From contig OZ059900.1 of assembly GCA_964057225.1 (NCBI GenBank), positions 14,198,001 to 14,262,000 on the forward strand: DNA of 64,000 bases, read 5' to 3'. Below, one piece after another: positions 39,342 through 64,000 of this stretch; within the stretch, counting starts at the first letter, position 1, and the number at the start of each line of letters is the position of its first letter. The stretch comes from Auanema rhodensis (taxonomy: Eukaryota > Animalia > Nematoda). The position numbers and the translations under genes are program-made. The notes beneath the pieces are model-generated. The model saw nothing but the letters and a program-made list of their open reading frames with translations, did no database searches and was not told the DNA's origin.

Positions 39342-39521
39342 CAAACTCTTGCCTTCTATCAATCTCCTAGAGAAAAAAAAAATCAAAAATCTCAAATCAC
39401 TTTTGAAAAAACAGAAAGTTCAAAACAACCTTTTTTCTAATAATTATCTTTTTTATCCGACTTTTGGAAGAAAACAAAAATAGCATAACATTCAATAACG
39501 ATGAATCAGAACAAAAACATT

Positions 39522-39593
39522 CTCCCCGGCCGGGAATTGAACCCGGGTCTTGCATGTGACAGACGCGGATACTCACCATTATACTACCGAGGA
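39522..39593 (-). tRNA. tRNA-Asp(GTC), copy 1, edge variant with 2 substitutions (D-loop and anticodon stem)
   Basis: 72-nt cloverleaf, anticodon GTC. Confidence 0.85.
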
Positions 39594-39960
39594 TTGAATT
39601 TGCACTTAGAAACTTTCATTAAGAGTGTGAGTTTGAATTATAGTAGAAAAATGAAACACTGTCTCTAACATATATTGATTTATGGCCTACTTTACTCAAA
39701 GAGCTAATTGAAGTTTGGTGTTACAATGAACAATTGATTAACGCTGACGTTTCAATTTTTTTCATCGTAATTAAGATAGAACATTTAAATTAAATAGAAA
39801 TGTTTGAAAATTTAAAAAAAAATCACAAGCTCAAATCACTTTTGAAAAAGCAGAAAGTTTAAAACAATCTTTTTTCTAATAATTATCGTTTTAATTCGAC
39901 TTTTGGAAGAAAACAAAATAAGCATAACATTCAATAACGATGAATCAGAACAAAAACATT

Positions 39961-40032
39961 CTCCCCGGCCGGGAATTGAACCCGGGTCTCGCATGTGACA
40001 GACGCGGATACTCACCACTATACTACCGAGGA
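39961..40032 (-). tRNA. tRNA-Asp(GTC)
   Basis: TCCTCGGTAGTATAGTGGTGAGTATCCGCGTCTGTCACATGCGAGACCCGGGTTCAATTCCCGGCCGGGGAG. Acceptor TCCTCGG/CCGGGGA, anticodon loop CTGTCAC, T-arm CCGGG-TTCAATT-CCCGG, discriminator G. Confidence 0.97.
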
Positions 40033-40399
40033 TTGAATTTGCACTTAGAAACTTTCATTAAGAGTGTGAGTTTGAATTATAGTAGAAAAATGAAACACTG
40101 TCTCTAACATATCTTGATTTATGGCCTACTTTACTCAAAGAGCTAATTGAAGTTTGGTGTTACAATGAACAATTGATTAACGCTGACGTTTCAATTTTTT
40201 TCATCGTAATTAAGATAGAACATTTAAATTAAATAGAAATGTTTGAAAATTTAAAAAAAAATCACAAGCTCAAATCACTTTTGAAAAAGCAGAAAGTTTA
40301 AAACAATCTTTTTTCTAATAATTATCGTTTTTATCCGACTTTTTGAAGAAAACAAAAATAGCATAACATTCAATAACGATGAATCAGAACAAAAACATT

Positions 40400-40471
40400 C
40401 TCCCCGGCCGGGAATTGAACCCGGGTCTCGCATGTGACAGACGCGGATACTCACCACTATACTACCGAGGA
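40400..40471 (-). tRNA. tRNA-Asp(GTC)
   Basis: Array consensus copy. Confidence 0.95.
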
Positions 40472-40838
40472 TTGAATTTGCACTTAGAAACTTTCATTAA
40501 GAGTGTGAGTTTGAAATATAGTAGAAAAATGAAACACTGTCTCTAACATATATTGATTTATGGCCTACTTTACTCAAAGAGCTAATTGAAGTTTGGTGTT
40601 AAAATGAACAATTGATTAACGCTGACGTTCCATTTTTTTTCATCGTAATTGAGATAGAATACTTAAATTAAATGGAAATGTTTAACAATTTAGAAAAAAA
40701 ACACAAGCTCAAATCACTTTTGAAAAAACAGAAAGTTTAAAATAACCTTTTTTCTAATAATTATATTTTTTATCCGACTTTTGGAAGAAAAGAAAAATAG
40801 CATAACATTCAATAACGATGAATCAGAACAAAAACATT

Positions 40839-40910
40839 CTCCCCGGCCGGGAATTGAACCCGGGTCTCGCATGTGACAGACGCGGATACTCACCACTATA
40901 CTACCGAGGA
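40839..40910 (-). tRNA. tRNA-Asp(GTC)
   Basis: Array consensus copy. Confidence 0.95.
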
Positions 40911-41277
40911 TTTAATTTGCACTTAGAAACTTTCATTAAGAGTGTGAGTTTGAAATATAGTAGAAAAATGAAACACTGTCTCTAACATATCTTGATTTAT
41001 AGCCTACTTTACTCAAAGAGCTAATTGAAGTTTGGTGTTACAATGAACAATTGATTAACGCTGACGTTTCAATTTTTTTCATCGTAATTAAGATAGAACA
41101 TTTAAATTAAACAGAAATGTTTGAAAATTTAAAAAAAAATCACAAGCTCAAATCACTTTTGAAAAAACAGAAAGTTTAAAACAACCTTTTTTCTAATAAT
41201 TATCGTCTTTATCCGACTTTTGGAAGAAAAGAAAAATAGCATAACATTCAATAACGATGAATCAGAACAAAAACATT

Positions 41278-41349
41278 CTCCCCGGCCGGGAATTGAACCC
41301 GGGTCTCGCATGTGACAGACGCGGATACTCACCACTATACTACCGAGGA
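41278..41349 (-). tRNA. tRNA-Asp(GTC)
   Basis: Array consensus copy. Confidence 0.95.
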
Positions 41350-41716
41350 TTTAATTTGCACTTAGAAACTTTCATTAAGAGTGTGAGTTTGAATTAAAGT
41401 AGAAAAATGAAACACTGTCTCTAACATATCTTGATTTATGGCCTACTTTACTCAAAGAGCTAATTGAAGTTTGGTGTTACAATGAACAATTGATTAACGC
41501 TGACGTTTCAATTTTTTTCATCGTAATTAAGATAGAACATTTAAATTGAATAGAAATGTTTGAAAATTTAAAAAAAAATCACAAGCTCAAATCACTTTTG
41601 AAAAAGCAGAAAGTTTAAAACAATCTTTTTTCTAATAATTATCGTTTTTATCCGACTTTTTGAAGAAAACAAAAATAGCATAACATTCAATAACGATGAA
41701 TCAGAACAAAAACATT

Positions 41717-41788
41717 CTCCCCGGCCGGGAATTGAACCCGGGTCTCGCATGTGACAGACGCGGATACTCACCACTATACTACCGAGGA
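41717..41788 (-). tRNA. tRNA-Asp(GTC)
   Basis: Array consensus copy. Confidence 0.95.
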
Positions 41789-42155
41789 TTGAATTTGCAC
41801 TTAGAAACTTTCATTAAGAGTGTGAGTTTGAAATATAGTAGAAAAATGAAACACTGTCTCTAACATATATTGATTTATGGCCTACTTTACTCAAAGAGCT
41901 AATTGAAGTTTGGTGTTAAAATGAACAATTGATTAACGCTGACGTTCCATTTTTTTTCATCGTAATTGAGATAGAATACTTAAATTAAATGGAAATGTTT
42001 AACAATTTAGAAAAAAAACACAAGCTCAAATCACTTTTGAAAAAACAGAAAGTTTAAAATAACCTTTTTTCTAATAATTATATTTTTTATCCGACTTTTG
42101 GAAGAAAAGAAAAATAGCATAACATTCAATAACGATGAATCAGAACAAAAACATT

Positions 42156-42227
42156 CTCCCCGGCCGGGAATTGAACCCGGGTCTCGCATGTGACAGACGC
42201 GGATACTCACCACTATACTACCGAGGA
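42156..42227 (-). tRNA. tRNA-Asp(GTC)
   Basis: Array consensus copy. Confidence 0.95.
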
Positions 42228-42594
42228 TTTAATTTGCACTTAGAAACTTTCATTAAGAGTGTGAGTTTGAATTAAAGTAGAAAAATGAAACACTGTCTCT
42301 AACATATCTTGATTTATGGCCTACTTTACTCAAAGAGCTAATTGAAGTTTGGTGTTACAATGAACAATTGATTAACGCTGACGTTTCAATTTTTTTCATC
42401 GTAATTAAGATAGAACATTTAAATTAAACAGAAATGTTTGAAAATTTAAAAAAAAATCACAAGCTCAAATCACTTTTGAAAAAACAGAAAGTTTAAAACA
42501 ACCTTTTTTCTAATAATTATCGTCTTTATCCGACTTTTGGAAGAAAAGAAAAATAGCATAACATTCAATAACGATGAATCAGAACAAAAACATT

Positions 42595-42666
42595 CTCCCC
42601 GGCCGGGAATTGAACCCGGGTCTCGCATGTGACAGACGCGGATACTCACCACTATACTACCGAGGA
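42595..42666 (-). tRNA. tRNA-Asp(GTC)
   Basis: Array consensus copy. Confidence 0.95.
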
Positions 42667-43032
42667 TTTAATTTGCACTTAGAAACTTTCATTAAGAGTG
42701 TGAGTTTGAATTAAAGTAGAAAAATGAAACACTGTCTCTAACATATCTTGATTTATGGCCTACTTTACTCAAAGAGCTAATTGAAGTTTGGTGTTAGAAT
42801 GAACGATTGATTAACGCTGACGTTTCAATTTTTTTCATCGTAATTGAGATAGAACATTTAAATTAAATGGAAATGTTTAACAATTTAGAAAAAAAACACA
42901 AGCTCAAATCACTTTTGAAAAAACAGAAAGTTTAAAACAACCTTTTTCTAATAATTATCTTTTTTATCCGACTTTTGGAAAAAAACAAAAATAGCATAAC
43001 ATTCAATAACGATGAATCAGAACAAAAACATT

Positions 43033-43104
43033 CTCCCCGGCCGGGAATTGAACCCGGGTCTCGCATGTGACAGACGCGGATACTCACCACTATACTACCG
43101 AGGA
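43033..43104 (-). tRNA. tRNA-Asp(GTC)
   Basis: Array consensus copy. Confidence 0.95.
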
Positions 43105-43471
43105 TTGAATTTGCACTTAGAAACTTTCATTAAGAGTGTGAGTTTGAAATATAGTAGAAAAATGAAACACTGTCTCTAACATATATTGATTTATGGCCTA
43201 CTTTACTCAAAGAGCTAATTGAAGTTTGGTGTTAAAATGAACAATTGATTAACGTTGACGTTCCGTTTTTTTTCATCGTAATTAAGATAGAACACTTAAA
43301 TTAAATAGAAATGTTTGAAAATTTAAAAAAAAATCACAAGCTCAAATCACTTTTGAAAAAGCAGAAAGTTTAAAATAACCTTTTTTCTAATAATTATCTT
43401 TTTAATTCGACTTTTGGAAGAAAACAAAAATAGCATAACATTCAATAACGATGAATCAGAACAAAAACATT

Positions 43472-43543
43472 CTCCCCGGCCGGGAATTGAACCCGGGTCT
43501 CGCATGTGACAGACGCGGATACTCACCACTATACTACCGAGGA
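43472..43543 (-). tRNA. tRNA-Asp(GTC)
   Basis: Array consensus copy. Confidence 0.95.
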
Positions 43544-43910
43544 TTTAATTTGCACTTAGAAACTTTCATTAAGAGTGTGAGTTTGAATTAAAGTAGAAAA
43601 ATGAAACACTGTCTCTAACATATCTTGATTTATGGCCTACTTTACTCAAAGAGCTAATTGAAGTTTGGTGTTAGAATGAACGATTGATTAACGCTGACGT
43701 TTCAATTTTTTTCATCGTAATTGAGATAGAATACTTAAATTAAATGAAAATGTTTAACAATTTAGAAAAAAAACACAAGCTCAAATCACTTTTGAAAAAA
43801 CAGAAAGTTTAAAATAACCTTTTTTCTAATAATTATATTTTTTATCCGACTTTTGGAAGAAAACAAAAATAGCATAACATTCAATAACGATGAATCAGAA
43901 CAAAAACATT

Positions 43911-43982
43911 CTCCCCGGCCGGGAATTGAACCCGGGTCTCGCATGTGACAGACGCGGATACTCACCACTATACTACCGAGGA
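43911..43982 (-). tRNA. tRNA-Asp(GTC)
   Basis: Array consensus copy. Confidence 0.95.
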
Positions 43983-44349
43983 TTTAATTTGCACTTAGAA
44001 ACTTTCATTAAGAGTGTGAGTTTGAATTAAAGTAGAAAAATGAAACACTGTCTCTAACATATCTTGATTTATGGCCTACTTTACTCAAAGAGCTAATTGA
44101 AGTTTGGTGTTACAATGAACAATTGATTAACGCTGACGTTTCAATTTTTTTCATCGTAATTAAGATAGAACATTTAAATTAAACAGAAATGTTTGAAAAT
44201 TTAAAAAAAAATCACAAGCTCAAATCACTTTTGAAAAAACAGAAAGTTTAAAACAACCTTTTTTCTAATAATTATCGTCTTTATCCGACTTTTGGAAGAA
44301 AAGAAAAATAGCATAACATTCAATAACGATGAATCAGAACAAAAACATT

Positions 44350-44421
44350 CTCCCCGGCCGGGAATTGAACCCGGGTCTCGCATGTGACAGACGCGGATAC
44401 TCACCACTATACTACCGAGGA
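44350..44421 (-). tRNA. tRNA-Asp(GTC)
   Basis: Array consensus copy. Confidence 0.95.
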
Positions 44422-44787
44422 TTTAATTTGCACTTAGAAACTTTCATTAAGAGTGTGAGTTTGAATTAAAGTAGAAAAATGAAACACTGTCTCTAACATA
44501 TCTTGATTTATGGCCTACTTTACTCAAAGAGCTAATTGAAGTTTGGTGTTAGAATGAACGATTGATTAACGCTGACGTTTCAATTTTTTTCATCGTAATT
44601 GAGATAGAACATTTAAATTAAATGGAAATGTTTAACAATTTAGAAAAAAAACACAAGCTCAAATCACTTTTGAAAAAACAGAAAGTTTAAAACAACCTTT
44701 TTCTAATAATTATCTTTTTTATCCGACTTTTGGAAAAAAACAAAAATAGCATAACATTCAATAACGATGAATCAGAACAAAAACATT

Positions 44788-44859
44788 CTCCCCGGCCGGG
44801 AATTGAACCCGGGTCTCGCATGTGACAGACGCGGATACTCACCACTATACTACCGAGGA
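44788..44859 (-). tRNA. tRNA-Asp(GTC)
   Basis: Array consensus copy. Confidence 0.95.
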
Positions 44860-45226
44860 TTGAATTTGCACTTAGAAACTTTCATTAAGAGTGTGAGTTT
44901 GAAATATAGTAGAAAAATGAAACACTGTCTCTAACATATATTGATTTATGGCCTACTTTACTCAAAGAGCTAATTGAAGTTTGGTGTTAAAATGAACAAT
45001 TGATTAACGTTGACGTTCCGTTTTTTTTCATCGTAATTAAGATAGAACACTTAAATTAAATAGAAATGTTTGAAAATTTAAAAAAAAATCACAAGCTCAA
45101 ATCACTTTTGAAAAAGCAGAAAGTTTAAAATAACCTTTTTTCTAATAATTATCTTTTTAATTCGACTTTTGGAAGAAAACAAAAATAGCATAACATTCAA
45201 TAACGATGAATCAGAACAAAAACATT

Positions 45227-45298
45227 CTCCCCGGCCGGGAATTGAACCCGGGTCTCGCATGTGACAGACGCGGATACTCACCACTATACTACCGAGGA
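45227..45298 (-). tRNA. tRNA-Asp(GTC)
   Basis: Array consensus copy. Confidence 0.95.
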
Positions 45299-45665
45299 TT
45301 GAATTTGCACTTAGAAACTTTCATTAAGAGTGTGAGTTTGAAATATAGTAGAAAAATGAAACACTGTCTCTAACATATATTGATTTATGGCCTACTTTAC
45401 TCAAAGAGCTAATTGAAGTTTGGTGTTAAAATGAACAATTGATTAACGCTGACGTTCCATTTTTTTTCATCGTAATTGAGATAGAATACTTAAATTAAAT
45501 GGAAATGTTTAACAATTTAAAAAAAAATCACAAGCTCAAATCACTTTTGAAAAAACAGAAAGTTTAAAACAACCTTTTTTCTAATAATTATCGTCTTTAT
45601 CCGACTTTTGGAAGAAAAGAAAAATAGCATAACATTCAATAACGATGAATCAGAACAAAAACATT

Positions 45666-45737
45666 CTCCCCGGCCGGGAATTGAACCCGGGTCTCGCATG
45701 TGACAGACGCGGATACCCACCACTATACTACCGAGGA
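45666..45737 (-). tRNA. tRNA-Asp(GTC), D-arm A>G variant
   Basis: GTGGGTATC instead of GTGAGTATC. Confidence 0.9.
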
Positions 45738-46103
45738 TTTAATTTGCACTTAGAAACTTTCATTAAGAGTGTGAGTTTGAATTAAAGTAGAAAAATGAAA
45801 CACTGTCTCTAACATATCTTGATTTATGGCCTACTTTACTCAAAGAGCTAATTGAAGTTTGGTGTTAGAATGAACGATTGATTAACGCTGACGTTTCAAT
45901 TTTTTTCATCGTAATTGAGATAGAACATTTAAATTAAATGGAAATGTTTAACAATTTAGAAAAAAAACACAAGCTCAAATCACTTTTGAAAAAACAGAAA
46001 GTTTAAAACAACCTTTTTCTAATAATTATCTTTTTTATCCGACTTTTGGAAAAAAACAAAAATAGCATAACATTCAATAACGATGAATCAGAACAAAAAC
46101 ATT

Positions 46104-46175
46104 CTCCCCGGCCGGGAATTGAACCCGGGTCTCGCATGTGACAGACGCGGATACTCACCACTATACTACCGAGGA
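46104..46175 (-). tRNA. tRNA-Asp(GTC)
   Basis: Array consensus copy. Confidence 0.95.
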
Positions 46176-46542
46176 TTGAATTTGCACTTAGAAACTTTCA
46201 TTGAGAGTGTGAGTTTGAATTAAAGTAGAAAAATGAAACACTGTCTCTAAGATATCTTGATTTATGGCCTACTTTACTCAAAGAGCTAATTGAAGTTTGG
46301 TGTTAAAATGAACCATTGATTAACGCTGACGTTCCATTTTTTTTCATCGTAATTGAGATAGAATACTTAAATTAAATGGAAATGTTTAACAATTTAGAAA
46401 AAAAACACAAGCTCAAATCACTTTTGAAAAAACAGAAAGTTTAAAATAACCTTTTTTCTAATAATTATATTTTTTATCCGACTTTTGGAAGAAAACAAAA
46501 ATAGCATAACATTCAATAACGATGAATCAGAACAAAAACATT

Positions 46543-46614
46543 CTCCCCGGCCGGGAATTGAACCCGGGTCTCGCATGTGACAGACGCGGATACTCACCAC
46601 TATACTACCGAGGA
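46543..46614 (-). tRNA. tRNA-Asp(GTC)
   Basis: Array consensus copy. Confidence 0.95.
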
Positions 46615-46981
46615 TTTAATTTGCACTTAGAAACTTTCATTAAGAGTGTGAGTTTGAAATATAGTAGAAAAATGAAACACTGTCTCTAACATATCTTGAT
46701 TTATGGCCTACTTTACTCAAAGAGCTAATTGAAGTTTGGTGTTACAATGAACAATTGATTAACGCTGACGTTCCATTTTTTTTCATCGTAATTGAGATAG
46801 AATACTTAAATTAAATGGAAATGTTTAACAATTTAAAAAAAAATCACAAGCTCAAATCACTTTTGAAAAAACAGAAAGTTTAAAACAACCTTTTTTCTAA
46901 TAATTATCGTCTTTATCCGACTTTTGGAAGAAAAGAAAAATAGCATAACATTCAATAACGATGAATCAGAACAAAAACATT

Positions 46982-47053
46982 CTCCCCGGCCGGGAATTGA
47001 ACCCGGGTCTCGCATGTGACAGACGCGGATACCCACCACTATACTACCGAGGA
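46982..47053 (-). tRNA. tRNA-Asp(GTC), D-arm A>G variant
   Basis: Same variant as the copy at 45666. Confidence 0.9.
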
Positions 47054-47419
47054 TTTAATTTGCACTTAGAAACTTTCATTAAGAGTGTGAGTTTGAATTA
47101 AAGTAGAAAAATGAAACACTATCTCTAACATATCTTGATTTATGGCCTACTTTACTCAAAGAGCTAATTGAAGTTTGGTGTTAGAATGAACGATTGATTA
47201 ACGCTGACGTTTCAATTTTTTTCATCGTAATTGAGATAGAACATTTAAATTAAATGGAAATGTTTAACAATTTAGAAAAAAAACACAAGCTCAAATCACT
47301 TTTGAAAAAACAGAAAGTTTAAAACAACCTTTTTCTAATAATTATCTTTTTTATCCGACTTTTGGAAAAAAACAAAAATAGCATAACATTCAATAACGAT
47401 GAATCAGAACAAAAACATT

Positions 47420-47491
47420 CTCCCCGGCCGGGAATTGAACCCGGGTCTCGCATGTGACAGACGCGGATACTCACCACTATACTACCGAGGA
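47420..47491 (-). tRNA. tRNA-Asp(GTC)
   Basis: Array consensus copy. Confidence 0.95.
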
Positions 47492-47858
47492 TTGAATTTG
47501 CACTTAGAAACTTTCATTGAGAGTGTGAGTTTGAATTAAAGTAGAAAAATGAAACACTGTCTCTAAGATATCTTGATTTATGGCCTACTTTACTTAAAGA
47601 GCTAATTGAAGTTTGGTGTTAAAATGAACAATTGATTAACGCTGACGTTCCATTTTTTTTCATCGTAATTGAGATAGAATACTTAAATTAAATGGAAATG
47701 TTTAACAATTTAGAAAAAAAACACAAGCTCAAATCACTTTTGAAAAAACAGAAAGTTTAAAATAACCTTTTTTCTAATAATTATATTTTTTATCCGACTT
47801 TTGGAAGAAAACAAAAATAGCATAACATTCAATAACGATGAATCAGAACAAAAACATT

Positions 47859-47930
47859 CTCCCCGGCCGGGAATTGAACCCGGGTCTCGCATGTGACAGA
47901 CGCGGATACTCACCACTATACTACCGAGGA
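47859..47930 (-). tRNA. tRNA-Asp(GTC)
   Basis: Array consensus copy. Confidence 0.95.
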
Positions 47931-48297
47931 TTTAATTTGCACTTAGAAACTTTCATTAAGAGTGTGAGTTTGAAATATAGTAGAAAAATGAAACACTGTC
48001 TCTAACATATCTTGATTTATGGCCTACTTTACTCAAAGAGCTAATTGAAGTTTGGTGTTACAATGAACAATTGATTAACGCTGACGTTTCAATTTTTTTC
48101 ATCGTAATTAAGATAGAACATTTAAATTAAACAGAAATGTTTGAAAATTTAAAAAAAAATCACAAGCTCAAATCACTTTTGAAAAAACAGAAAGTTTAAA
48201 ACAACCTTTTTTCTAATAATTATCGTCTTTATCCGACTTTTGGAAGAAAAGAAAAATAGCATAACATTCAATAACGATGAATCAGAACAAAAACATT

Positions 48298-48369
48298 CTC
48301 CCCGGCCGGGAATTGAACCCGGGTCTCGCATGTGACAGACGCGGATACTCACCACTATACTACCGAGGA
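48298..48369 (-). tRNA. tRNA-Asp(GTC)
   Basis: Array consensus copy. Confidence 0.95.
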
Positions 48370-48735
48370 TTTAATTTGCACTTAGAAACTTTCATTAAGA
48401 GTGTGAGTTTGAATTAAAGTAGAAAAATGAAACACTGTCTCTAACATATCTTGATTTATGGCCTACTTTACTCAAAGAGCTAATTGAAGTTTGGTGTTAG
48501 AATGAACGATTGATTAACGCTGACGTTTCAATTTTTTTCATCGTAATTGAGATAGAAAATTTAAATTAAATGGAAATGTTTAACAATTTAGAAAAAAAAC
48601 ACAAGCTCAAATCACTTTTGAAAAAACAGAAAGTTTAAAACAACCTTTTTCTAATAATTATCTTTTTTATCCGACTTTTGGAAAAAAACAAAAATAGCAT
48701 AACATTCAATAACGATGAATCAGAACAAAAACATT

Positions 48736-48807
48736 CTCCCCGGCCGGGAATTGAACCCGGGTCTTGCATGTGACAGACGCGGATACTCACCACTATACTA
48801 CCGAGGA
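48736..48807 (-). tRNA. tRNA-Asp(GTC), anticodon-stem variant
   Basis: ATGCAAGAC instead of ATGCGAGAC. Confidence 0.85.
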
Positions 48808-49174
48808 TTGAATTTGCACTTAGAAACTTTCATTAAGAGTGTGAGTTTGAAATATAGTAGAAAAATGAAACACTGTCTCTAACATATATTGATTTATGGC
48901 CTACTTTACTCAAAGAGCTAATTGAAGTTTGGTGTTAAAATGAACAATTGATTAACGTTGACGTTCCGTTTTTTTTCATCGTAATTAAGATAGAACACTT
49001 AAATTAAATAGAAATGTTTGAAAATTTAAAAAAAAATCACAAGCTCAAATCACTTTTGAAAAAGCAGAAAGTTTAAAATAACCTTTTTTCTAATAATTAT
49101 CTTTTTAATTCGACTTTTGGAAGAAAACAAAATAAGCATAACATTCAATAACGATGAATCAGAACAAAAACATT

Positions 49175-49246
49175 CTCCCCGGCCGGGAATTGAACCCGGG
49201 TCTCGCATGTGACAGACGCGGATACTCACCACTATACTACCGAGGA
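49175..49246 (-). tRNA. tRNA-Asp(GTC)
   Basis: Array consensus copy. Confidence 0.95.
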
Positions 49247-49613
49247 TTGAATTTGCACTTAGAAACTTTCATTGAGAGTGTGAGTTTGAATTAAAGTAGA
49301 AAAATGAAACACTGTCTCTAAGATATCTTGATTTATGGCCTACTTTACTCAAAGAGCTAATTGAAGTTTGGTGTTAAAATGAACAATTGATTAACGCTGA
49401 CGTTCCATTTTTTTTCATCGTAATTGAGATAGAATACTTAAATTAAATGGAAATGTTTAACAATTTAGAAAAAAAACACAAGCTCAAATCACTTTTGAAA
49501 AAACAGAAAGTTTAAAATAACCTTTTTTCTAATAATTATATTTTTTATCCGACTTTTGGAAGAAAACAAAAATAGCATAACATTCAATAACGATGAATCA
49601 GAACAAAAACATT

Positions 49614-49685
49614 CTCCCCGGCCGGGAATTGAACCCGGGTCTCGCATGTGACAGACGCGGATACTCACCACTATACTACCGAGGA
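49614..49685 (-). tRNA. tRNA-Asp(GTC)
   Basis: Array consensus copy. Confidence 0.95.
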
Positions 49686-54001: not shown

Positions 54002-54073
54002 CTCCCCGTCCGGGAATTGAACCCGGGTCTCGCATGTGACAGACGCGGATACTCACCACTATACTACCGAGGA
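54002..54073 (-). tRNA. tRNA-Asp(GTC), acceptor-stem variant
   Basis: 3' end reads CCCGGACGGGGAG. Confidence 0.8.
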
Positions 54074-54440
54074 TTGAATTTGCACTTAGAAACTTTCATT
54101 AAGAGTGTGAGTTTGAAATATAGTAGAAAAATGAAACACTGTCTCTAACATATATTGATTTATGGCCTACTTTACTCAAAGAGCTAATTGAAGTTTGGTG
54201 TTAAAATGAACAATTGATTAACGCTGACGTTCCATTTTTTTTCATCGTAATTGAGATAGAATACTTAAATTAAATGGAAATGTTTAACAATTTAAAAAAA
54301 AATCACAAGCTCAAATCACTTTTGAAAAAACAGAAAGTTTAAAACAACCTTTTTTCTAATAATTATCGTCTTTATCCGACTTTTGGAAGAAAAGAAAAAT
54401 AGCATAACATTCAATAACGATGAATCAGAACAAAAACATT

Positions 54441-54512
54441 CTCCCCGGCCGGGAATTGAACCCGGGTCTCGCATGTGACAGACGCGGATACTCACCACTA
54501 TACTACCGAGGA
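54441..54512 (-). tRNA. tRNA-Asp(GTC)
   Basis: Array consensus copy. Confidence 0.95.
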
Positions 54513-54878
54513 TTTAATTTGCACTTAGAAACTTTCATTAAGAGTGTGAGTTTGAATTAAAGTAGAAAAATGAAACACTGTCTCTAACATATCTTGATTT
54601 ATGGCCTACTTTACTCAAAGAGCTAATTGAAGTTTGGTGTTAGAATGAACGATTGATTAACGCTGACGTTTCAATTTTTTTCATCGTAATTGAGATAGAA
54701 CATTTAAATTAAATGGAAATGTTTAACAATTTAGAAAAAAAACACAAGCTCAAATCACTTTTGAAAAAACAGAAAGTTTAAAACAACCTTTTTCTAATAA
54801 TTATCTTTTTTATCCGACTTTTGGAAAAAAACAAAAATAGCATAACATTCAATAACGATGAATCAGAACAAAAACATT

Positions 54879-54950
54879 CTCCCCGGCCGGGAATTGAACC
54901 CGGGTCTCGCATGTGACAGACGCGGATACTCACCACTATACTACCGAGGA
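54879..54950 (-). tRNA. tRNA-Asp(GTC)
   Basis: Array consensus copy. Confidence 0.95.
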
Positions 54951-55316
54951 TTGAATTTGCACTTAGAAACTTTCATTAAGAGTGTGAGTTTGAAATATAG
55001 TAGAAAAATGAAACACTGTCTCTAACATATATTGATTTATGGCCTACTTTACTCAAAGAGCTAATTGAAGTTTGGTGTTAAAATGAACAATTGATTAACG
55101 TTGACGTTCCGTTTTTTTTCATCGTAATTAAGATAGAACACTTAAATTAAATAGAAATGTTTGAAAATTTAAAAAAAAATCACAAGCTCAAATCACTTTT
55201 GAAAAAACAGAAAGTTTAAAACAACCTTTTTCTAATAATTATCTTTTTTATCCGACTTTTGGAAAAAAACAAAAATAGCATAACATTCAATAACGATGAA
55301 TCAGAACAAAAACATT

Positions 55317-55388
55317 CTCCCCGGCCGGGAATTGAACCCGGGTCTCGCATGTGACAGACGCGGATACTCACCACTATACTACCGAGGA
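55317..55388 (-). tRNA. tRNA-Asp(GTC)
   Basis: Array consensus copy. Confidence 0.95.
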
Positions 55389-55755
55389 TTGAATTTGCAC
55401 TTAGAAACTTTCATTGAGAGTGTGAGTTTGAATTAAAGTAGAAAAATGAAACACTGTCTCTAAGATATCTTGATTTATGGCCTACTTTACTCAAAGAGCT
55501 AATTGAAGTTTGGTGTTAGAATGAACAATTGATTAACGCTGACGTTCCATTTTTTTTTATCGTAATTGAGATAGAATACTTAAATTAAATGAAAATGTTT
55601 AACAATTTAGAAAAAAAACACAAGCTCAAATCAATTTTGAAAAAACAGAAAGTTTAAAATAACCTTTTTTCTAATAATTATCTTTTTAATTCGACTTTTG
55701 GAAGAAAACAAAAATAGCATAACATTCAATAACGATGAATCAGAACAAAAACATT

Positions 55756-55827
55756 CTCCCCGGCCGGGAATTGAACCCGGGTCTCGCATGTGACAGACGC
55801 GGATACTCACCACTATACTACCGAGGA
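55756..55827 (-). tRNA. tRNA-Asp(GTC)
   Basis: Array consensus copy. Confidence 0.95.
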
Positions 55828-56194
55828 TTGAATTTGCACTTAGAAACTTTCATTAAGAGTGTGAGTTTGAAATATAGTAGAAAAATGAAACACTGTCTCT
55901 AACATATATTGATTTATGGCCTACTTTACTCAAAGAGCTAATTGAAGTTTGGTGTTAAAATGAACAATTGATTAACGCTGACGTTCCGTTTTTTTTCATC
56001 GTAATTAAGATAGAACACTTAAATTAAATAGAAATGTTTGAAAATTTAAAAAAAAATCACAAGCTCAAATCACTTTTGAAAAAACGGAAAGTTTAAAACA
56101 ACCTTTTTTCTAATAATTATCGTCTTTATCCGACTTTTGGAAGAAAAGAAAAATAGCATAACATTCAATAACGATGAATCAGAACAAAAACATT

Positions 56195-56266
56195 CTCCCC
56201 GGCCGGGAATTGAACCCGGGTCTCGCATGTGACAGACGAGGATACTCACCACTATACTACCGAGGA
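56195..56266 (-). tRNA. tRNA-Asp(GTC), anticodon-stem G>T variant
   Basis: CCTCGTCTGTC instead of CCGCGTCTGTC. Confidence 0.85.
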
Positions 56267-56633
56267 TTGAATTTGCACTTAGAAACTTTCATTAAGAGTG
56301 TGAGTTTGAATTATAGTAGAAAAATGAAACACTGTCTCTAACATATATTGATTTATGGCCTACTTTACTCAAAGAGCTAATTGAAGTTTGGTGTTAAAAT
56401 GAACAATTGATTAACGCTGACGTTCCATTTTTTTTCATCGTAATTGAGATAGAATACTTAAATTAAATGGAAATGTTTAACAATTTAAAAAAAAATCACA
56501 AGCTCAAATCACTTTTGAAAAAACAGAAAGTTTAAAACAACCTTTTTTCTAATAATTATCGTCTTTATCCGACTTTTGGAAGAAAAGAAAAATAGCATAA
56601 CATTCAATAACGATGAATCAGAACAAAAACATT

Positions 56634-56705
56634 CTCCCCGGCCGGGAATTGAACCCGGGTCTCGCATGTGACAGACGCGGATACTCACCACTATACTACC
56701 GAGGA
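56634..56705 (-). tRNA. tRNA-Asp(GTC)
   Basis: Array consensus copy. Confidence 0.95.
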
Positions 56706-57071
56706 TTTAATTTGCACTTAGAAACTTTCATTAAGAGTGTGAGTTTGAATTAAAGTAGAAAAATGAAACACTGTCTCTAACATATCTTGATTTATGGCCT
56801 ACTTTACTCAAAGAGCTAATTGAAGTTTGGTGTTAGAATGAACGATTGATTAACGCTGACGTTTCAATTTTTTTCATCGTAATTGAGATAGAACATTTAA
56901 ATTAAATGGAAATGTTTAACAATTTAGAAAAAAAACACAAGCTCAAATCACTTTTGAAAAAACAGAAAGTTTAAAACAACCTTTTTCTAATAATTATCTT
57001 TTTTATCCGACTTTTGGAAAAAAACAAAAATAGCATAACATTCAATAACGATGAATCAGAACAAAAACATT

Positions 57072-57143
57072 CTCCCCGGCCGGGAATTGAACCCGGGTCT
57101 CGCATGTGACAGACGCGGATACTCACCACTATACTACCGAGGA
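57072..57143 (-). tRNA. tRNA-Asp(GTC)
   Basis: Array consensus copy. Confidence 0.95.
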
Positions 57144-57510
57144 TTGAATTTGCACTTAGAAACTTTCATTAAGAGTGTGAGTTTGAAATATAGTAGAAAA
57201 ATGAAACACTGTCTCTAACATATATTGATTTATGGCCTACTGTACTCAAAGAGCTAATTGAAGTTTGGTGTTAAAATGAACAATTGATTAACGTTGACGT
57301 TCCGTTTTTTTTCATCGTAATTAAGATAGAACACTTAAATTAAATAGAAATGTTTGAAAATTTAAAAAAAAATCACAAGCTCAAATCACTTTTGAAAAAG
57401 CAGAAAGTTTAAAATAACCTTTTTTCTAATAATTATCTTTTTAATTCGACTTTTGGAAGAAAACAAAATAAGCATAACATTCAATAACGATGAATCAGAA
57501 CAAAAACATT

Positions 57511-57582
57511 CTCCCCGGCCGGGAATTGAACCCGGGTCTCGCATGTGACAGACGCGGATACTCACCACTATACTACCGAGGA
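57511..57582 (-). tRNA. tRNA-Asp(GTC)
   Basis: Array consensus copy. Confidence 0.95.
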
Positions 57583-57948
57583 TTGAATTTGCACTTAGAA
57601 ACTTTCATTAAGAGTGTGAGTTTGAATTAAAGTAGAAAAATGAAACACTGTCTCTAACATATCTTGATTTATGGCCTACTTTACTCAAAGAGCTAATTGA
57701 AGTTTGGTGTTAGAATGAACGATTGATTAACGCTGACGTTTCAATTTTTTTCATCGTAATTGAGATAGAACATTTAAATTAAATGGAAATGTTTAACAAT
57801 TTAGAAAAAAAACACAAGCTCAAATCACTTTTGAAAAAACAGAAAGTTTAAAACAACCTTTTTCTAATAATTATCTTTTTTATCCGACTTTTGGAAAAAA
57901 ACAAAAATAGCATAACATTCAATAACGATGAATCAGAACAAAAACATT

Positions 57949-58020
57949 CTCCCCGGCCGGGAATTGAACCCGGGTCTCGCATGTGACAGACGCGGATACT
58001 CACCACTATACTACCGAGGA
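57949..58020 (-). tRNA. tRNA-Asp(GTC)
   Basis: Array consensus copy. Confidence 0.95.
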
Positions 58021-58387
58021 TTGAATTTGCACTTAGAAACTTTCATTGAGAGTGTGAGTTTGAATTAAAGTAGAAAAATGAAACACTGTCTCTAAGATAT
58101 CTTGACTTATGGCCTACTTTACTCAAAGAGCTAATTGAAGTTTGGTGTTAAAATGAACAATTGATTAACGCTGACGTTCCATTTTTTTTCATCGTAATTG
58201 AGATAGAATACTTAAATTAAATGGAAATGTTTAACAATTTAGAAAAAAAACACAAGCTCAAATCACTTTTGAAAAAACAGAAAGTTTAAAATAACCTTTT
58301 TTCTAATAATTATATTTTTTATCCGACTTTTGGAAGAAAACAAAAATAGCATAACATTCAATAACGATGAATCAGAACAAAAACATT

Positions 58388-58459
58388 CTCCCCGGCCGGG
58401 AATTGAACCCGGGTCTCGCATGTGACAGACGCGGATACTCACCACTATACTACCGAGGA
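58388..58459 (-). tRNA. tRNA-Asp(GTC)
   Basis: Array consensus copy. Confidence 0.95.
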
Positions 58460-58826
58460 TTTAATTTGCACTTAGAAACTTTCATTAAGAGTGTGAGTTT
58501 GAAATATAGTAGAAAAATGAAACACTGTCTCTAACATATCTTGATTTATGGCCTACTTTACTCAAAGAGCTAATTGAAGTTTGGTGTTACAATGAACAAT
58601 TGATTAACGCTGACGTTTCAATTTTTTTCATCGTAATTAAGATAGAACATTTAAATTAAACAGAAATGTTTGAAAATTTAAAAAAAAATCACAAGCTCGA
58701 ATCACTTTTGAAAAAACAGAAAGTTTAAAACAACCTTTTTTCTAATAATTATCGTCTTTATCCGACTTTTGGAAGAAAAGAAAAATAGCATAACATTCAA
58801 TAACGATGAATCAGAACAAAAACATT

Positions 58827-58898
58827 CTCCCCGGCCGGGAATTGAACCCGGGTCTCGCATGTGACAGACGCGGATACTCACCACTATACTACCGAGGA
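58827..58898 (-). tRNA. tRNA-Asp(GTC)
   Basis: Array consensus copy. Confidence 0.95.
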
Positions 58899-59264
58899 TT
58901 TAATTTGCACTTAGAAACTTTCATTAAGAGTGTGAGTTTGAATTAAAGTAGAAAAATGAAACACTGTCTCTAACATATCTTGATTTATGGCCTACTTTAC
59001 TCAAAGAGCTAATTGAAGTTTGGTGTTAGAATGAACGATTGATTAACGCTGACGTTTCAATTTTTTTCATCGTAATTGAGATAGAACATTTAAATTAAAT
59101 GGAAATGTTTAACAATTTAGAAAAAAAACACAAGCTCAAATCACTTTTGAAAAAACAGAAAGTTTAAAACAACCTTTTTCTAATAATTATCTTTTTTATC
59201 CGACTTTTGGAAAAAAACAAAAATAGCATAACATTCAATAACGATGAATCAGAACAAAAACATT

Positions 59265-59336
59265 CTCCCCGGCCGGGAATTGAACCCGGGTCTCGCATGT
59301 GACAGACGCGGATACTCACCACTATACTACCGAGGA
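59265..59336 (-). tRNA. tRNA-Asp(GTC)
   Basis: Array consensus copy. Confidence 0.95.
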
Positions 59337-59703
59337 TTGAATTTGCACTTAGAAACTTTCATTAAGAGTGTGAGTTTGAAATATAGTAGAAAAATGAAAC
59401 ACTGTCTCTAACATATATTGATTTATGGCCTACTTTACTCAAAGAGCTAATTGAAGTTTGGTGTTAAAATGAACAATTGATTAACGTTGACGTTCCGTTT
59501 TTTTTCATCGTAATTAAGATAGAACACTTAAATTAAATAGAAATGTTTGAAAATTTAAAAAAAAATCACAAGCTCAAATCACTTTTGAAAAAGCAGAAAG
59601 TTTAAAATAACCTTTTTTCTAATAATTATCTTTTTAATTCGACTTTTGGAAGAAAACAAAATAAGCATAACATTCAATAACGATGAATCAGAACAAAAAC
59701 ATT

Positions 59704-59775
59704 CTCCCCGGCCGGGAATTGAACCCGGGTCTCGCATGTGACAGACGCGGATACTCACCACTATACTACCGAGGA
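59704..59775 (-). tRNA. tRNA-Asp(GTC)
   Basis: Array consensus copy. Confidence 0.95.
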
Positions 59776-60140
59776 TTGAATTTGCACTTAGAAACTTTCA
59801 TTGAGAGTGTGAGTTTGAATTAAAGTAGAAAAATGAAACACTGTCTCTAAGATATCTTGATTTATGGCCTACTTTACTCAAAGAGCTAATTGAAGTTTGG
59901 TGTTAGAATGAACAATTGATTAACGCTGACGTTCCGTTTTTTCATCGTAATTAAGATAGAACACTTAAATTAAATAGAAATGTTTGAAAATTTAAAAAAA
60001 AATCACAAGCTCAAATCACTTTTGAAAAAACAGAAAGTTTAAAACAACCTTTTTTCTAATAATTATCGTCTTTATCCGACTTTTGGAAGAAAAGAAAAAT
60101 AGCATAACATTCAATAACGATGAATCAGAACAAAAACATT

Positions 60141-60212
60141 CTCCCCGGCCGGGAATTGAACCCGGGTCTCGCATGTGACAGACGCGGATACTCACCACTA
60201 TACTACCGAGGA
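60141..60212 (-). tRNA. tRNA-Asp(GTC)
   Basis: Array consensus copy. Confidence 0.95.
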
Positions 60213-60579
60213 TTGAATTTGCACTTAGAAACTTTCATTAAGAGTGTGAGTTTGAAATATAGTAGAAAAATGAAACACTGTCTCTAACATATATTGATTT
60301 ATGGCCTACTTTACTCAAAGAGCTAATTGAAGTTTGGTGTTAGAATGAACAATTGATTAACGCTGACGTTCCATTTTTTTTTATCGTAATTGAGATAGAA
60401 TACTTAAATTAAATGAAAATGTTTAACAATTTAGAAAAAAAACACAAGCTCAAATCAATTTTGAAAAAACAGAAAGTTTAAAATAACCTTTTTTCTAATA
60501 ATTATCTTTTTAATTCGACTTTTGGAAGAAAACAAAAATAGCATAACATTCAATAACGATGAATCAGAACAAAAACATT

Positions 60580-60651
60580 CTCCCCGGCCGGGAATTGAAC
60601 CCGGGTCTCGCATGTGACAGACGCGGATACTCACCACTATACTACCGAGGA
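60580..60651 (-). tRNA. tRNA-Asp(GTC)
   Basis: Array consensus copy. Confidence 0.95.
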
Positions 60652-61018
60652 TTGAATTTGCACTTAGAAACTTTCATTAAGAGTGTGAGTTTGAAATATA
60701 GTAGAAAAATGAAACACTGTCTCTAACATATATTGATTTATGGCCTACTTTACTCAAAGAGCTAATTGAAGTTTGGTGTTAAAATGAACAATTGATTAAC
60801 GCTGACGTTCCGTTTTTTTTCATCGTAATTAAGATAGAACACTTAAATTAAATAGAAATGTTTGAAAATTTAAAAAAAAATCACAAGCTCAAATCACTTT
60901 TGAAAAAACAGAAAGTTTAAAACAACCTTTTTTCTAATAATTATCGTCTTTATCCGACTTTTGGAAGAAAAGAAAAATAGCATAACATTCAATAACGATG
61001 AATCAGAACAAAAACATT

Positions 61019-61090
61019 CTCCCCGGCCGGGAATTGAACCCGGGTCTCGCATGTGACAGACGAGGATACTCACCACTATACTACCGAGGA
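61019..61090 (-). tRNA. tRNA-Asp(GTC), anticodon-stem G>T variant
   Basis: Same variant as the copy at 56195. Confidence 0.85.
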
Positions 61091-61457
61091 TTGAATTTGC
61101 ACTTAGAAACTTTCATTAAGAGTGTGAGTTTGAAATATAGTAGAAAAATGAAACACTGTCTCTAACATATATTGATTTATGGCCTACTTTACTCCAAGAG
61201 CTAATTGAAGTTTGGTGTTAAAATGAACAATTGATTAACGCTGACGTTCCATTTTTTTTCATCGTAATTGAGATAGAATACTTAAATTAAATGGAAATGT
61301 TTAACAATTTAAAAAAAAATCACAAGCTCAAATCACTTTTGAAAAAACAGAAAGTTTAAAACAACCTTTTTTCTAATAATTATCGTCTTTATCCGACTTT
61401 TGGAAGAAAAGAAAAATAGCATAACATTCAATAACGATGAATCAGAACAAAAACATT

Positions 61458-61529
61458 CTCCCCGGCCGGGAATTGAACCCGGGTCTCGCATGTGACAGAC
61501 GCGGATACTCACCACTATACTACCGAGGA
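61458..61529 (-). tRNA. tRNA-Asp(GTC)
   Basis: Array consensus copy. Confidence 0.95.
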
Positions 61530-61895
61530 TTTAATTTGCACTTAGAAATTTTCATTAAGAGTGTGAGTTTGAATTAAAGTAGAAAAATGAAACACTGTCT
61601 CTAACATATCTTGATTTATGGCCTACTTTACTCAAAGAGCTAATTGAAGTTTGGTGTTAGAATGAACGATTGATTAACGCTGACGTTTCAATTTTTTTCA
61701 TCGTAATTGAGATAGAACATTTAAATTAAATGGAAATGTTTAACAATTTAGAAAAAAAACACAAGCTCAAATCACTTTTGAAAAAACAGAAAGTTTAAAA
61801 CAACCTTTTTCTAATAATTATCTTTTTTATCCGACTTTTGGAAAAAAACAAAAATAGCATAACATTCAATAACGATGAATCAGAACAAAAACATT

Positions 61896-61967
61896 CTCCC
61901 CGGCCGGGAATTGAACCCGGGTCTCGCATGTGACAGACGCGGATACTCACCACTATACTACCGAGGA
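61896..61967 (-). tRNA. tRNA-Asp(GTC)
   Basis: Array consensus copy. Confidence 0.95.
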
Positions 61968-62334
61968 TTGAATTTGCACTTAGAAACTTTCATTAAGAGT
62001 GTGAGTTTGAAATATAGTAGAAAAATGAAACACTGTCTCTAACATATATTGATTTCTGGCCTACTTTACTCAAAGAGCTAATTGAAGTTTGGTGTTAAAA
62101 TGAACAATTGATTAACGTTGACGTTCCGTTTTTTTTCATCGTAATTAAGATAGAACACTTAAATTAAATAGAAATGTTTGAAAATTTAAAAAAAAATCAC
62201 AAGCTCAAATCACTTTTGAAAAAGCAGAAAGTTTAAAATAACCTTTTTTCTAATAATTATCTTTTTAATTCGACTTTTGGAAGAAAACAAAATAAGCATA
62301 ACATTCAATAACGATGAATCAGAACAAAAACATT

Positions 62335-62406
62335 CTCCCCGGCCGGGAATTGAACCCGGGTCTCGCATGTGACAGACGCGGATACTCACCACTATACTAC
62401 CGAGGA
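62335..62406 (-). tRNA. tRNA-Asp(GTC)
   Basis: Array consensus copy. Confidence 0.95.
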
Positions 62407-62772
62407 TTGAATTTGCACTTAGAAACTTTCATTGAGAGTGTGAGTTTGAATTAAAGTAGAAAAATGAAACACTGTCTCTAAGATATCTTGATTTATGGCC
62501 TACTTTACTCAAAGAGCTAATTGAAGTTTGGTGTTAGAATGAACAATTGATTAACGCTGACGTTCCATTTTTTTTTATCGTAATTGAGATAGAATACTTA
62601 AATTAAATGAAAATGTTTAACAATTTAGAAAAAAAACACAAGCTCAAATCACTTTTGAAAAAACAGAAAGTTTAAAACAACCTTTTTCTAATAATTATCT
62701 TTTTTATCCGACTTTTGGAAAAAAACAAAAATAGCATAACATTCAATAACGATGAATCAGAACAAAAACATT

Positions 62773-62844
62773 CTCCCCGGCCGGGAATTGAACCCGGGTC
62801 TCGCATGTGACAGACGCGGATACTCACCACTATACTACCGAGGA
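62773..62844 (-). tRNA. tRNA-Asp(GTC)
   Basis: Array consensus copy. Confidence 0.95.
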
Positions 62845-63211
62845 TTGAATTTGCACTTAGAAACTTTCATTAAGAGTGTGAGTTTGAAATATAGTAGAAA
62901 AATGAAACACTGTCTCTAACATATATTGATTTATGGCCTACTTTACTCAAAGAGCTAATTGAAGTTTGGTGTTAAAATGAACAATTGATTAACGTTGACG
63001 TTCCGTTTTTTTTCATCGTAATTAAGATAGAACACTTAAATTAAATAGAAATGTTTAAAAATTTAAAAAAAAATCACAAGCTCAAATCACTTTTGAAAAA
63101 GCAGAAAGTTTAAAATAACCTTTTTTCTAATAATTATCTTTTTAATTCGACTTTTGGAAGAAAACAAAATAAGCATAACATTCAATAACGATGAATCAGA
63201 ACAAAAACATT

Positions 63212-63283
63212 CTCCCCGGCCGGGAATTGAACCCAGGTCTCGCATGTGACAGACGCGGATACTCACCACTATACTACCGAGGA
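63212..63283 (-). tRNA. tRNA-Asp(GTC), T-stem C>T variant
   Basis: GACCTGGGTTC instead of GACCCGGGTTC. Confidence 0.88.
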
Positions 63284-63650
63284 TTGAATTTGCACTTAGA
63301 AACTTTCATTAAGAGTGTGAGTTTGAAATATAGTAGAAAAATGAAACACTGTCTCTAACATATATTGATTTATGGCCTACTTTACTCAAAGAGCTAATTG
63401 AAGTTTGGTGTTACAATGAACAATTGATTAACGCTGACGTTTCAATTTTTTTCATCGTAATTAAGATAGAACATTTAAATTAAACAGAAATGTTTGAAAA
63501 TTTAAAAAAAAATCACAAGCTCAAATCACTTTTGAAAAAACAGAAAGTTTAAAACAACCTTTTTTCTAATAATTATCGTCTTTATCCGACTTTTGGAAGA
63601 AAAGAAAAATAGCATAACATTCAATAACGATGAATCAGAACAAAAACATT

Positions 63651-63722
63651 CTCCCCGGCCGGGAATTGAACCCGGGTCTCGCATGTGACAGACGCGGATA
63701 CTCACCACTATACTACCGAGGA
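63651..63722 (-). tRNA. tRNA-Asp(GTC), copy 56
   Basis: Array consensus copy. Confidence 0.95.
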
Positions 63723-64000
63723 TTTAATTTGCACTTAGAAACTTTCATTAAGAGTGTGAGTTTGAATTAAAGTAGAAAAATGAAACACTGTCTCTAACAT
63801 ATCTTGATTTATGGCCTACTTTACTCAAAGAGCTAATTGAAGTTTGGTGTTAGAATGAACGATTGATTAACGCTGACGTTTCAATTTTTTTCATCGTAAT
63901 TGAGATAGAACATTTAAATTAAATGGAAATGTTTAACAATTTAGAAAAAAAACACAAGCTCAAATCACTTTTGAAAAAACAGAAAGTTTAAAACAACCTT

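Follow-up and report, generated by a model that had tools for sequence, protein, structure and literature searches.

Why should a single tRNA gene be repeated head to tail over more than 24 kb of an animal chromosome? The question is raised by a 64-kb stretch of DNA, hereafter the window, in which a tandem array of tRNA-Asp(GTC) genes begins at position 39374 and is still running at the window end at 64000. The reason why some animals keep large germline-only fractions of their genomes is an open question in the field of programmed DNA elimination, and this array offers a handy test case, having a known gene product and a built-in promoter, neither of which is found in anonymous satellites. 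[quoted passage not shown]

Repeats of this class have been described for Auanema rhodense in a preprint (Gonzalez de la Rosa et al., 28 August 2026, bioRxiv 10.64898/2026.08.27.747507). The germline-restricted repeats listed there include 5S rRNA, 'several' tRNA loci and U2 arrays, with an RNA-gene density below 20% per 10 kb and tandem-repeat units of 167-504 nt. The existence of tandem tRNA arrays in the germline-only DNA of A. rhodense is already known from that source, and the novelty implied by an earlier note on the window was overstated. In its main text the preprint leaves the isotype unnamed and is without monomer anatomy, variation analysis, higher-order structure or expression. Added here are the isotype, the anatomy of the unit, its higher-order structure, the failure of tRNA mutations to spread, and the relation of the array to break-site motifs.

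Structure of the tRNA-Asp array

Tandem Repeats Finder (TRF) detected a single tRNA-Asp(GTC) array in the window, at 39374-64000, with a period of 439, 56.1 copies, 95% matches and 0% indels. ARAGORN predicted 56 tRNA-Asp(GTC) genes within it, one for each 439/438-bp unit and every one on the minus strand, and all 56 copies exceeded the gathering score of 29 bits for Rfam family RF00005 (46 at 55.4 bits; minimum 40.7). The earlier note had described a 438/439-bp monomer with one 72-nt tRNA-Asp, A and B boxes and a T5 terminator, repeated in at least 56 head-to-tail copies for more than 24 kb up to the window edge. This description was confirmed, and the strand, which it left unstated, can now be added. 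The distance from gene to gene was 439 bp in 40 cases, 438 bp in 14 and 437 bp in one. A fixed-length monomer of 437-439 bp in a long head-to-tail run is what characterizes a satellite.

The monomers are far from identical, as 44 of the 55 full monomers are distinct sequences. Identity between monomers was lowest for direct neighbors (95.6% at lag 1) and higher at lag 3 (96.9%) and lag 4 (96.6%). Four to five monomer subtypes, one of them the 438-bp form, are interleaved along the array and recur in a loose order of three to four monomers, and chimeric monomers are present among them. Recurring subtypes are the mark of a higher-order satellite; the order here is loose and does not amount to a strict higher-order repeat. 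The array is therefore a satellite with loose higher-order structure, and the interleaving of subtypes together with the chimeric monomers is attributable to unequal exchange.

The same features bear on the concern, raised in the earlier note, that the assembler over-expanded a few tRNA-Asp copies. The adjoining 3,495-bp units of the git-1 block are nearly identical (0-9 differences), as might be expected of such an artefact. The distinct monomers, their structured subtype order and the chimeras, however, make assembler stutter unlikely for the array, and small-scale variation is reported to let HiFi reads map uniquely in repeat blocks of this genome (Gonzalez de la Rosa et al. 2026). We regard an assembly artefact as very improbable.

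A representative full monomer (39594-40032, minus strand) is made up of the tRNA gene and a 367-nt AT-rich spacer. At the proximal edge lies a partial monomer (39374-39593, minus strand), the tRNA copy of which, at 39522-39593, is the sole double mutant of the array (G15A, G43A). The proximal end of the array falls within a poly-T tract of the spacer. No edge effect on divergence was observed among the full monomers.

The tRNA gene and its Pol III signals

The consensus gene of 72 nt (39961-40032, minus strand; ARAGORN and Rfam) folds into a cloverleaf in which 21 of 21 pairs are standard, G10-U25 being present, with the anticodon GUC. Direct reading located the A box TAGTATAGTGG at tRNA positions 8-18 (40015-40025) and the B box GGTTCAATTCC at positions 51-61 (39972-39982). 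The textbook consensus sequences of type-2 Pol III promoters are TRGCNNAGTGG for the A box and GGTTCGANTCC for the B box, and each box agrees with its consensus at 10 of 11 positions. One copy carries the substitution C60G, which affects both the B box and the T stem. A T5 Pol III terminator was read at trailer positions +5 to +9 (39952-39956, minus strand) within the trailer AATGTTTTTG, which is identical in 55 monomers, and the first 28 nt 3' of the tRNA do not vary in any of 55 monomers. CCA is not encoded. Judged from these signals, each copy has the tested sequence properties of a nuclear type-2 Pol III gene for tRNA-Asp-GTC. The array-specific leader ends in AAAUUCAA and the array-specific trailer is AAUGUUUUU (AAUG), and this unique leader and trailer would separate transcripts of the array from those of dispersed tRNA-Asp genes.

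The spacer differs sharply from the gene in GC content (26% against 60%). It contains no recognisable open reading frame (ORF); a search of four monomers at E values up to 1 yielded no further Rfam family, giving only weak matches that overlap the tRNA; and a BLAST comparison of the monomer with the rest of the window and with every fetched locus revealed no homology of the spacer. A tRNA-derived short interspersed nuclear element (SINE), or a satellite derived from one, was ruled out, as the tRNA is full length and is followed immediately by its own T5 terminator; the lack of similarity of the spacer to the other sequences compared also opposes such a reading. A piRNA promoter in the spacer was considered for the sequence GTGTTTCA, which matches 7 of 8 positions of the C. 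elegans piRNA upstream core, and was dropped because a suitably spaced 5' U context is missing. A scan for sigma-70 promoters was set aside as irrelevant to a eukaryotic Pol III gene.

Variation within the array

Among the 56 tRNA copies, 46 are identical; in each of the other 10, one or two substitutions were found, at nine positions in total. Of the altered positions, six disrupt pairing in a stem, one yields a G-U pair and two are located in the D loop, and no substitution occurs in more than two copies. The tRNA genes had been called intact in the earlier note; this holds for the 46 identical copies and needs correction for the 10 substituted ones, in which the changes are mostly stem-breaking.

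Nucleotide diversity is 0.0055 in the tRNA against 0.041 in the spacer. Of all 439 circular segments of 100 nt in the monomer, the segment that starts at tRNA position 1 was the least variable (11 minor-allele counts; median 142). The spacer contains 34 columns with variants found in at least four monomers. These common variants leave a gap of 115 nt that corresponds to the tRNA and about 40 nt downstream, which under random placement has a probability of about 0.001. Rare variants, on the other hand, are not depleted in the tRNA (8 variable columns out of 72; spacer, 53 out of 367), and the rare variants within the tRNA are mostly stem-breaking. Mutations of the tRNA arise but fail to spread in the array. 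This is the pattern expected if damaged copies, or arrays rich in them, are disfavoured, and it points to present or recent constraint on the tRNA and its 3' flank. Gene conversion from dispersed tRNA-Asp genes is insufficient alone to explain the pattern, because the invariance extends into the array-specific 3' flank. Compared with an environmental tRNA-Asp, the tRNA of the window differs at six positions that form exactly three compensatory pairs, so that 100% of pairing is preserved, indicating that the cloverleaf has been maintained by evolution. The within-array variation thus hints at selection inside DNA that the soma, as argued below, discards.

The stretch free of common variants is asymmetric, extending about 40 nt 3' of the tRNA (monomer columns 73-112, for instance 39921-39960, minus strand) but only 2 nt on the 5' side. 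A common variant is found at -3 of the tRNA; the 3' flank is thus more uniform than the 5' flank to which TFIIIB binds.

Relation of the array to a probable elimination boundary

Two features described for A. rhodense are reproduced in the flank of the array. According to the preprint, eliminated DNA contains six copies of GIT2 in tandem, with a paralogue in the soma, and the X chromosome carries five SFE elimination motifs of identical score at 3.5-kb spacing within 14 kb (10.64898/2026.08.27.747507). In the window, 6.8 tandem copies of a 3,495-bp unit (15731-39372, minus strand), each with a whole git-1/GIT2-like gene, precede the array, and the last copy lacks its 5' end, which is cut by the tRNA array. 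The block contains six identical 29-nt degenerate palindromes GTTTTGTTGAGGCTAAGCCTGGCCTGAAA resembling SFE motifs, the first at 19198-19226 and five further ones between 22693 and 36701 (centres 22707, 26202, 29697, 33192 and 36687). The five are spaced by 3,495 bp and span 13,980 bp from first to last; if one of the six motifs serves as break site, five are left within the reported distance. The tRNA density of the array, 72/439 or 16.4%, lies under the 20% given in the preprint, and the 439-bp unit lies within its range of 167-504 nt. From the agreement of these descriptions, together with the synteny to Auanema sp. JU1783 described below, the window very probably represents the X chromosome of A. 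rhodense (GCA_964057225.1) at an elimination boundary.

The core GGCNNNGCC occurs exactly six times in the window (0.97 expected), and always as GGCTAAGCC (0.04 expected), starting at 19208, 22703, 26198, 29693, 33188 and 36683, once for each junction of git-1 units and 2.7-20 kb proximal to the tRNA array. These sites had escaped a strict scan for palindromes, in which at least 11 of 14 arm pairs were required, and were recovered only via the GGCNNNGCC core. We propose that the motif centred at 19212 serves as the somatic break and telomere-addition site. No telomere repeats were detected in the window.

A second palindromic site, AATAAAAGAAGGCGTGCCCATCTTTCATT (15597-15625), has 10 of 14 arm pairs and lies outside the first git-1 unit, at a distance of about 120 nt. 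It is more symmetrical than the six SFE-like motifs, and its core GGCGTGCCC is one mismatch away from GGCNNNGCC. In O. tipulae, telomere addition is primed by the conserved GGC-NNN-GCC core of the related elimination motif, and replacement of GCC by CCC lowered the function of the motif to about 11%. The site centred at 15611 has CCC where GCC is expected, and may be a weak or former elimination motif.

Two layouts can be drawn from these motifs. In the one we favour, which is the probable arrangement, breakage takes place at the motif centred at 19212 and the array falls on the eliminated side. The syntenic genes and the first full-length git-1 would then be kept in the soma, and five full git-1 copies, one truncated copy, the five spare motifs and the tRNA-Asp array would be lost. 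In the other, which we judge unlikely, the array is retained in somatic cells and only the git-1 block is eliminated, as the 'very small' central-X region of the preprint. The eliminated piece would be bounded on the right by 36687 and on the left by 15611 or by a site beyond the window, so that the tRNA-Asp array would begin one of the two somatic X-derived chromosomes and serve ordinary translation there.

The counts fit this second layout equally well, as the eliminated piece would then contain five motifs (19212-33192, 13,980 bp) together with six full copies of git-1. The preprint also describes the central-X eliminated region as non-repetitive as well as very small, and both X-derived somatic chromosomes as keeping large repeat blocks (Gonzalez de la Rosa et al. 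2026). Loss of the git-1 block, however, would leave the soma with a 5'-truncated git-1 only, although the copy beside irg-7 is the syntenic orthologue. The first layout is preferred because the soma keeps an intact git-1 at the ancestral position; because the alternative left boundary in the window, at 15611, carries CCC instead of GCC; because a boundary further left would delete the conserved single-copy irg-7-like and K2P genes, which are not mentioned among the notable eliminated genes of the preprint; and because the preprint places tRNA arrays among the germline-restricted repeats. Of its fluorescence in situ hybridization (FISH) probes AT-1, XR-1, XT-1 and XT-2, none matches the window, and the array monomer belongs to none of those families. 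The probes as a set do not help to decide between retention and elimination; the mismatch of XR-1, the probe for a retained repeat, is one point against the second layout. In whole-animal DNA the preprint gives read depths of 29x for eliminated and 146-236x for retained sequence.

From gene content and the match to the preprint, the array most likely lies in DNA discarded from somatic cells. Of the three suggestions made in the earlier note, germline-limited DNA is accordingly the one to be favoured: the GIT2 copies, the SFE spacing and the tRNA arrays of the preprint speak for it, with the reservation that the placement is deduced from these matches rather than measured.

Two side observations concern the palindrome. 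It ends precisely at the duplication boundary, as homology at lag 3495 begins at 15731, which is 19226 minus 3495, and its core includes CTAAGCCT, which matches the telomere strand (GCCTAA)n over 8 nt. It is conceivable that breakage at the motif was linked to the origin of the git-1 tandem duplication.

Proposed origin and use of the array

For the origin of the array we envisage that a repeat unit took up a functional tRNA-Asp gene and then expanded on the X chromosome, about 20 kb distal to a break site of programmed DNA elimination. The DNA would exist in germ line and early embryo alike, its loss from somatic cells setting in at about the 12-cell stage. Growth and continuing reshuffling may have proceeded by unequal exchange or replication slippage between monomers, in a region where selection against repeats is weak. 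The copies would have stayed Pol III-competent, with both promoter boxes (A and B), a cloverleaf bearing Asp identity features and the T5 terminator, and many of them would be transcribable in the germ line, adding a germline-only gene dosage of tRNA-Asp. From the constraint on the tRNA and the flank with the terminator it would follow that copies are, or recently were, used; such use would most plausibly fall in the germ line and first cleavages, since these are the only time and place at which the DNA exists if it is eliminated. The idea of a germline or oocyte tRNA stockpile, another suggestion of the earlier note, can be reconciled with the constraint observed in the tRNA segment.

The main competitor is an inert satellite. 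By this account, a tRNA-Asp gene was caught in a slippage-expanded unit of elimination-destined DNA and silenced, adding nothing to the tRNA pool, and the uniformity of copies reflects recent expansion and homogenisation. We consider it possible, if rather doubtful. It accords with the model of the preprint, in which weak selection lets repeats build up in eliminated DNA as an epiphenomenon (Gonzalez de la Rosa et al. 2026), and with the 18% of copies that already bear mostly stem-breaking substitutions. It does not account for the distribution of variants, since 34 spacer variants have spread to at least four copies and none has done so in the tRNA or the next 40 nt, despite rare mutations there. 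Ectopic conversion from dispersed tRNA genes would leave the invariant array-specific 3' flank unexplained. In addition, only 215 of the 19,554 tRNA loci annotated in the preprint are classed as pseudogenes (10.64898/2026.08.27.747507).

Several points weigh against the explanation of a Pol III-competent satellite in eliminated DNA. Trimethylation of histone H3 at lysine 27 (H3K27me3) is enriched on lagging A. rhodense DNA before elimination (Gonzalez de la Rosa et al. 2026), and Arabidopsis tRNA clusters with intact promoters are silent (PMC7544208); both observations fit a silent array. Part of the low tRNA diversity could stem from selection acting on the few ancestral copies that preceded the latest expansion. 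At G/C sites, rare mutations affect 7 of 43 sites in the tRNA and 7 of 97 in the spacer (odds ratio 2.5, P = 0.13); as this excess is not significant, no transcription-associated mutagenesis is claimed, and the array gives no independent sign of transcription. The species is assigned through a match to published descriptions, and the counts of motifs and git-1 copies also fit a layout with the array retained in the soma.

A further alternative is that the array acts in cis as a structural element, the third suggestion of the earlier note. Hundreds of phased, TFIIIC-bound B boxes would form a chromatin boundary or a condensin-loading block or, in an X-specific version, would serve meiotic pairing or the unusual X inheritance of Auanema, the output of tRNA being secondary. 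The array abuts a putative break site and the boundary between genes and repeats, and most copies have intact A and B boxes. A tRNA repeat at human 1q23.3 has been proposed as a boundary element (PMC4041453), and the preprint speculates that X-specific repeat blocks may aid partner choice. Such an element, however, predicts constraint on the B box only, and the constraint was seen over the whole tRNA and the terminator-bearing 3' flank, as for a transcribed gene. We hold this alternative to be quite improbable.

If the Pol III-competent copies are expressed, tRNA gene dosage would be switched by DNA elimination; in the silent case, the array would show how far a functional Pol III gene can multiply as passive cargo. 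A stronger form of the proposal, which we offer tentatively and think more likely wrong than right, is a germline-only battery of Pol III genes: transcription of thousands of tRNA genes would take place in the gonad and first embryonic divisions, and every somatic lineage would then delete them. If true, it would be DNA elimination, and not chromatin, that sets the tRNA gene dosage of a tissue, a selective benefit would be shown for the first time for a repeat block in nematode eliminated DNA, and the Xenopus oocyte-type 5S genes would have a functional counterpart in the battery.

Comparison with other tandem tRNA arrays

In Xenopus, the oocyte-type 5S rRNA genes and tandem tRNA families are very numerous tandem Pol III genes on whose output oogenesis and early development depend, and the switch between oocyte and somatic types is made by chromatin and transcription factors on DNA that is kept in all cells. 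The likeness to the window lies in tandem Pol III genes; for the array, germline-specific use is a proposal.

The nearest known counterpart of the array is the class of tRNA arrays described for A. rhodense, which it resembles in unit size, tRNA density, GIT2 neighbours and SFE spacing, and the array is most likely one of the 'several tRNA loci' of the preprint (10.64898/2026.08.27.747507). Entamoeba also has tRNA genes as the repeat unit of long head-to-tail arrays (PMC2652664). Almost all its tRNA genes are so arranged, in 25 unit types of up to five genes each that make up more than 10% of the genome, and microsatellite-like short tandem repeats separate the genes of a unit (PMC2652664). 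The array in the window is not of this type, having one gene per unit and, by TRF, the 439-bp period only, with no internal short repeats. The host also differs, being an animal whose tRNA arrays, according to the preprint, are found mainly in DNA discarded by the soma.

Arabidopsis clusters and the human 1q23.3 repeat resemble the array only as tandem tRNA DNA. In Arabidopsis, extra copies of a few isoacceptors stand in tandem with conserved Pol III cis-elements, but these clusters are repressed by DNA methylation and kept in every cell (PMC7544208), whereas physical loss of the DNA is proposed here. The human repeat likewise bears tRNA genes and varies in copy number; it differs in its 7.3-kb GC-rich unit, its CTCF site, its 9-43 copies and its lack of germline restriction (PMC4041453).

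A metagenome scan with the exact 72-nt tRNA gave no match, and a degenerate query returned only an unrelated tandem unit with three tRNA genes. This environmental sequence (JGI B570J14230_10005159, L003) is a perfect tandem repeat carrying a tRNA-Asp(GTC) 92% identical to that of the window; it differs in the 2,360-bp unit, the three tRNA genes (Asp, Met and one of 89 nt), the unrelated spacers and the 2.2 copies on the contig. At positions 1-5164 of L003, and in a second contig (L004, B570J29638_100641), the unit consists of the 89-nt gene, Asp-GTC and Met-CAT, and belongs to an environmental eukaryote. The 89-nt gene of the L003 unit probably bears an intron.

The git-1 block and flanking genes

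Each git-1 unit encodes ArfGap, ankyrin repeat (ANK), Spa2-homology (SHD) and GIT1_C domains, and the units differ from one another at 0-9 positions. A protein search with one exon of the window returned nothing, exon queries being defeated by a length filter and by the want of annotated proteins for this species. With the ArfGap exon as query, the search of representative proteins identified only GIT homologues with 45-66% identity, mostly of nematodes, which fixes the clade and leaves the species undecided. In a tblastn comparison of 200 GIT proteins with the 3,495-bp unit, those of Pristionchus and Auanema came out best (about 37-41% identity); the protein collection searched contained none that is near-identical, and an exact-product look-up of one window ORF returned none on record.

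The single-copy genes to the left (4877-15300, minus strand) are collinear with Auanema sp. JU1783. They include an irg-7-like gene with VWA, EGF and Ig_Irg-7 domains (about 6763-15300) and a K2P channel gene (4877-5826), and at the left window edge the terminal exon of an AMP-binding, acyl-CoA synthetase-like gene was detected (130-393), all on the minus strand. The JU1783 locus CALQYR020007273.1 (10001-22157) is collinear exon by exon with positions 4877-19300 of the window for git-1, the irg-7-like gene and the K2P gene, with 50-96% amino-acid identity and about 72% nucleotide identity in the channel gene. The Irg-7 domain match, the nematode GIT homologues and this exon-level synteny support the nematode origin of the DNA assumed in the earlier note. 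In place of the repeats of the window, JU1783 carries a nuclear-receptor gene. No tRNA gene was found within 10 kb of git-1 in JU1783 or Pristionchus pacificus, nor a GGCNNNGCC site within 10 kb of git-1 in JU1783; the absence of tRNA genes near git-1 in both species indicates that an array at this place is lineage-specific.

Two further observations were made on the git-1 block. Six alleles are common to its first two units against the remaining five. At its distal end, a 32-nt filler (39342-39373, minus strand) joins the truncated git-1 unit to the array, and is a near copy, identical at about 28 of 32 positions, of 17567-17598, a git-1 intron/exon boundary. The filler is a templated insertion, such as polymerase-theta-mediated end joining leaves behind.

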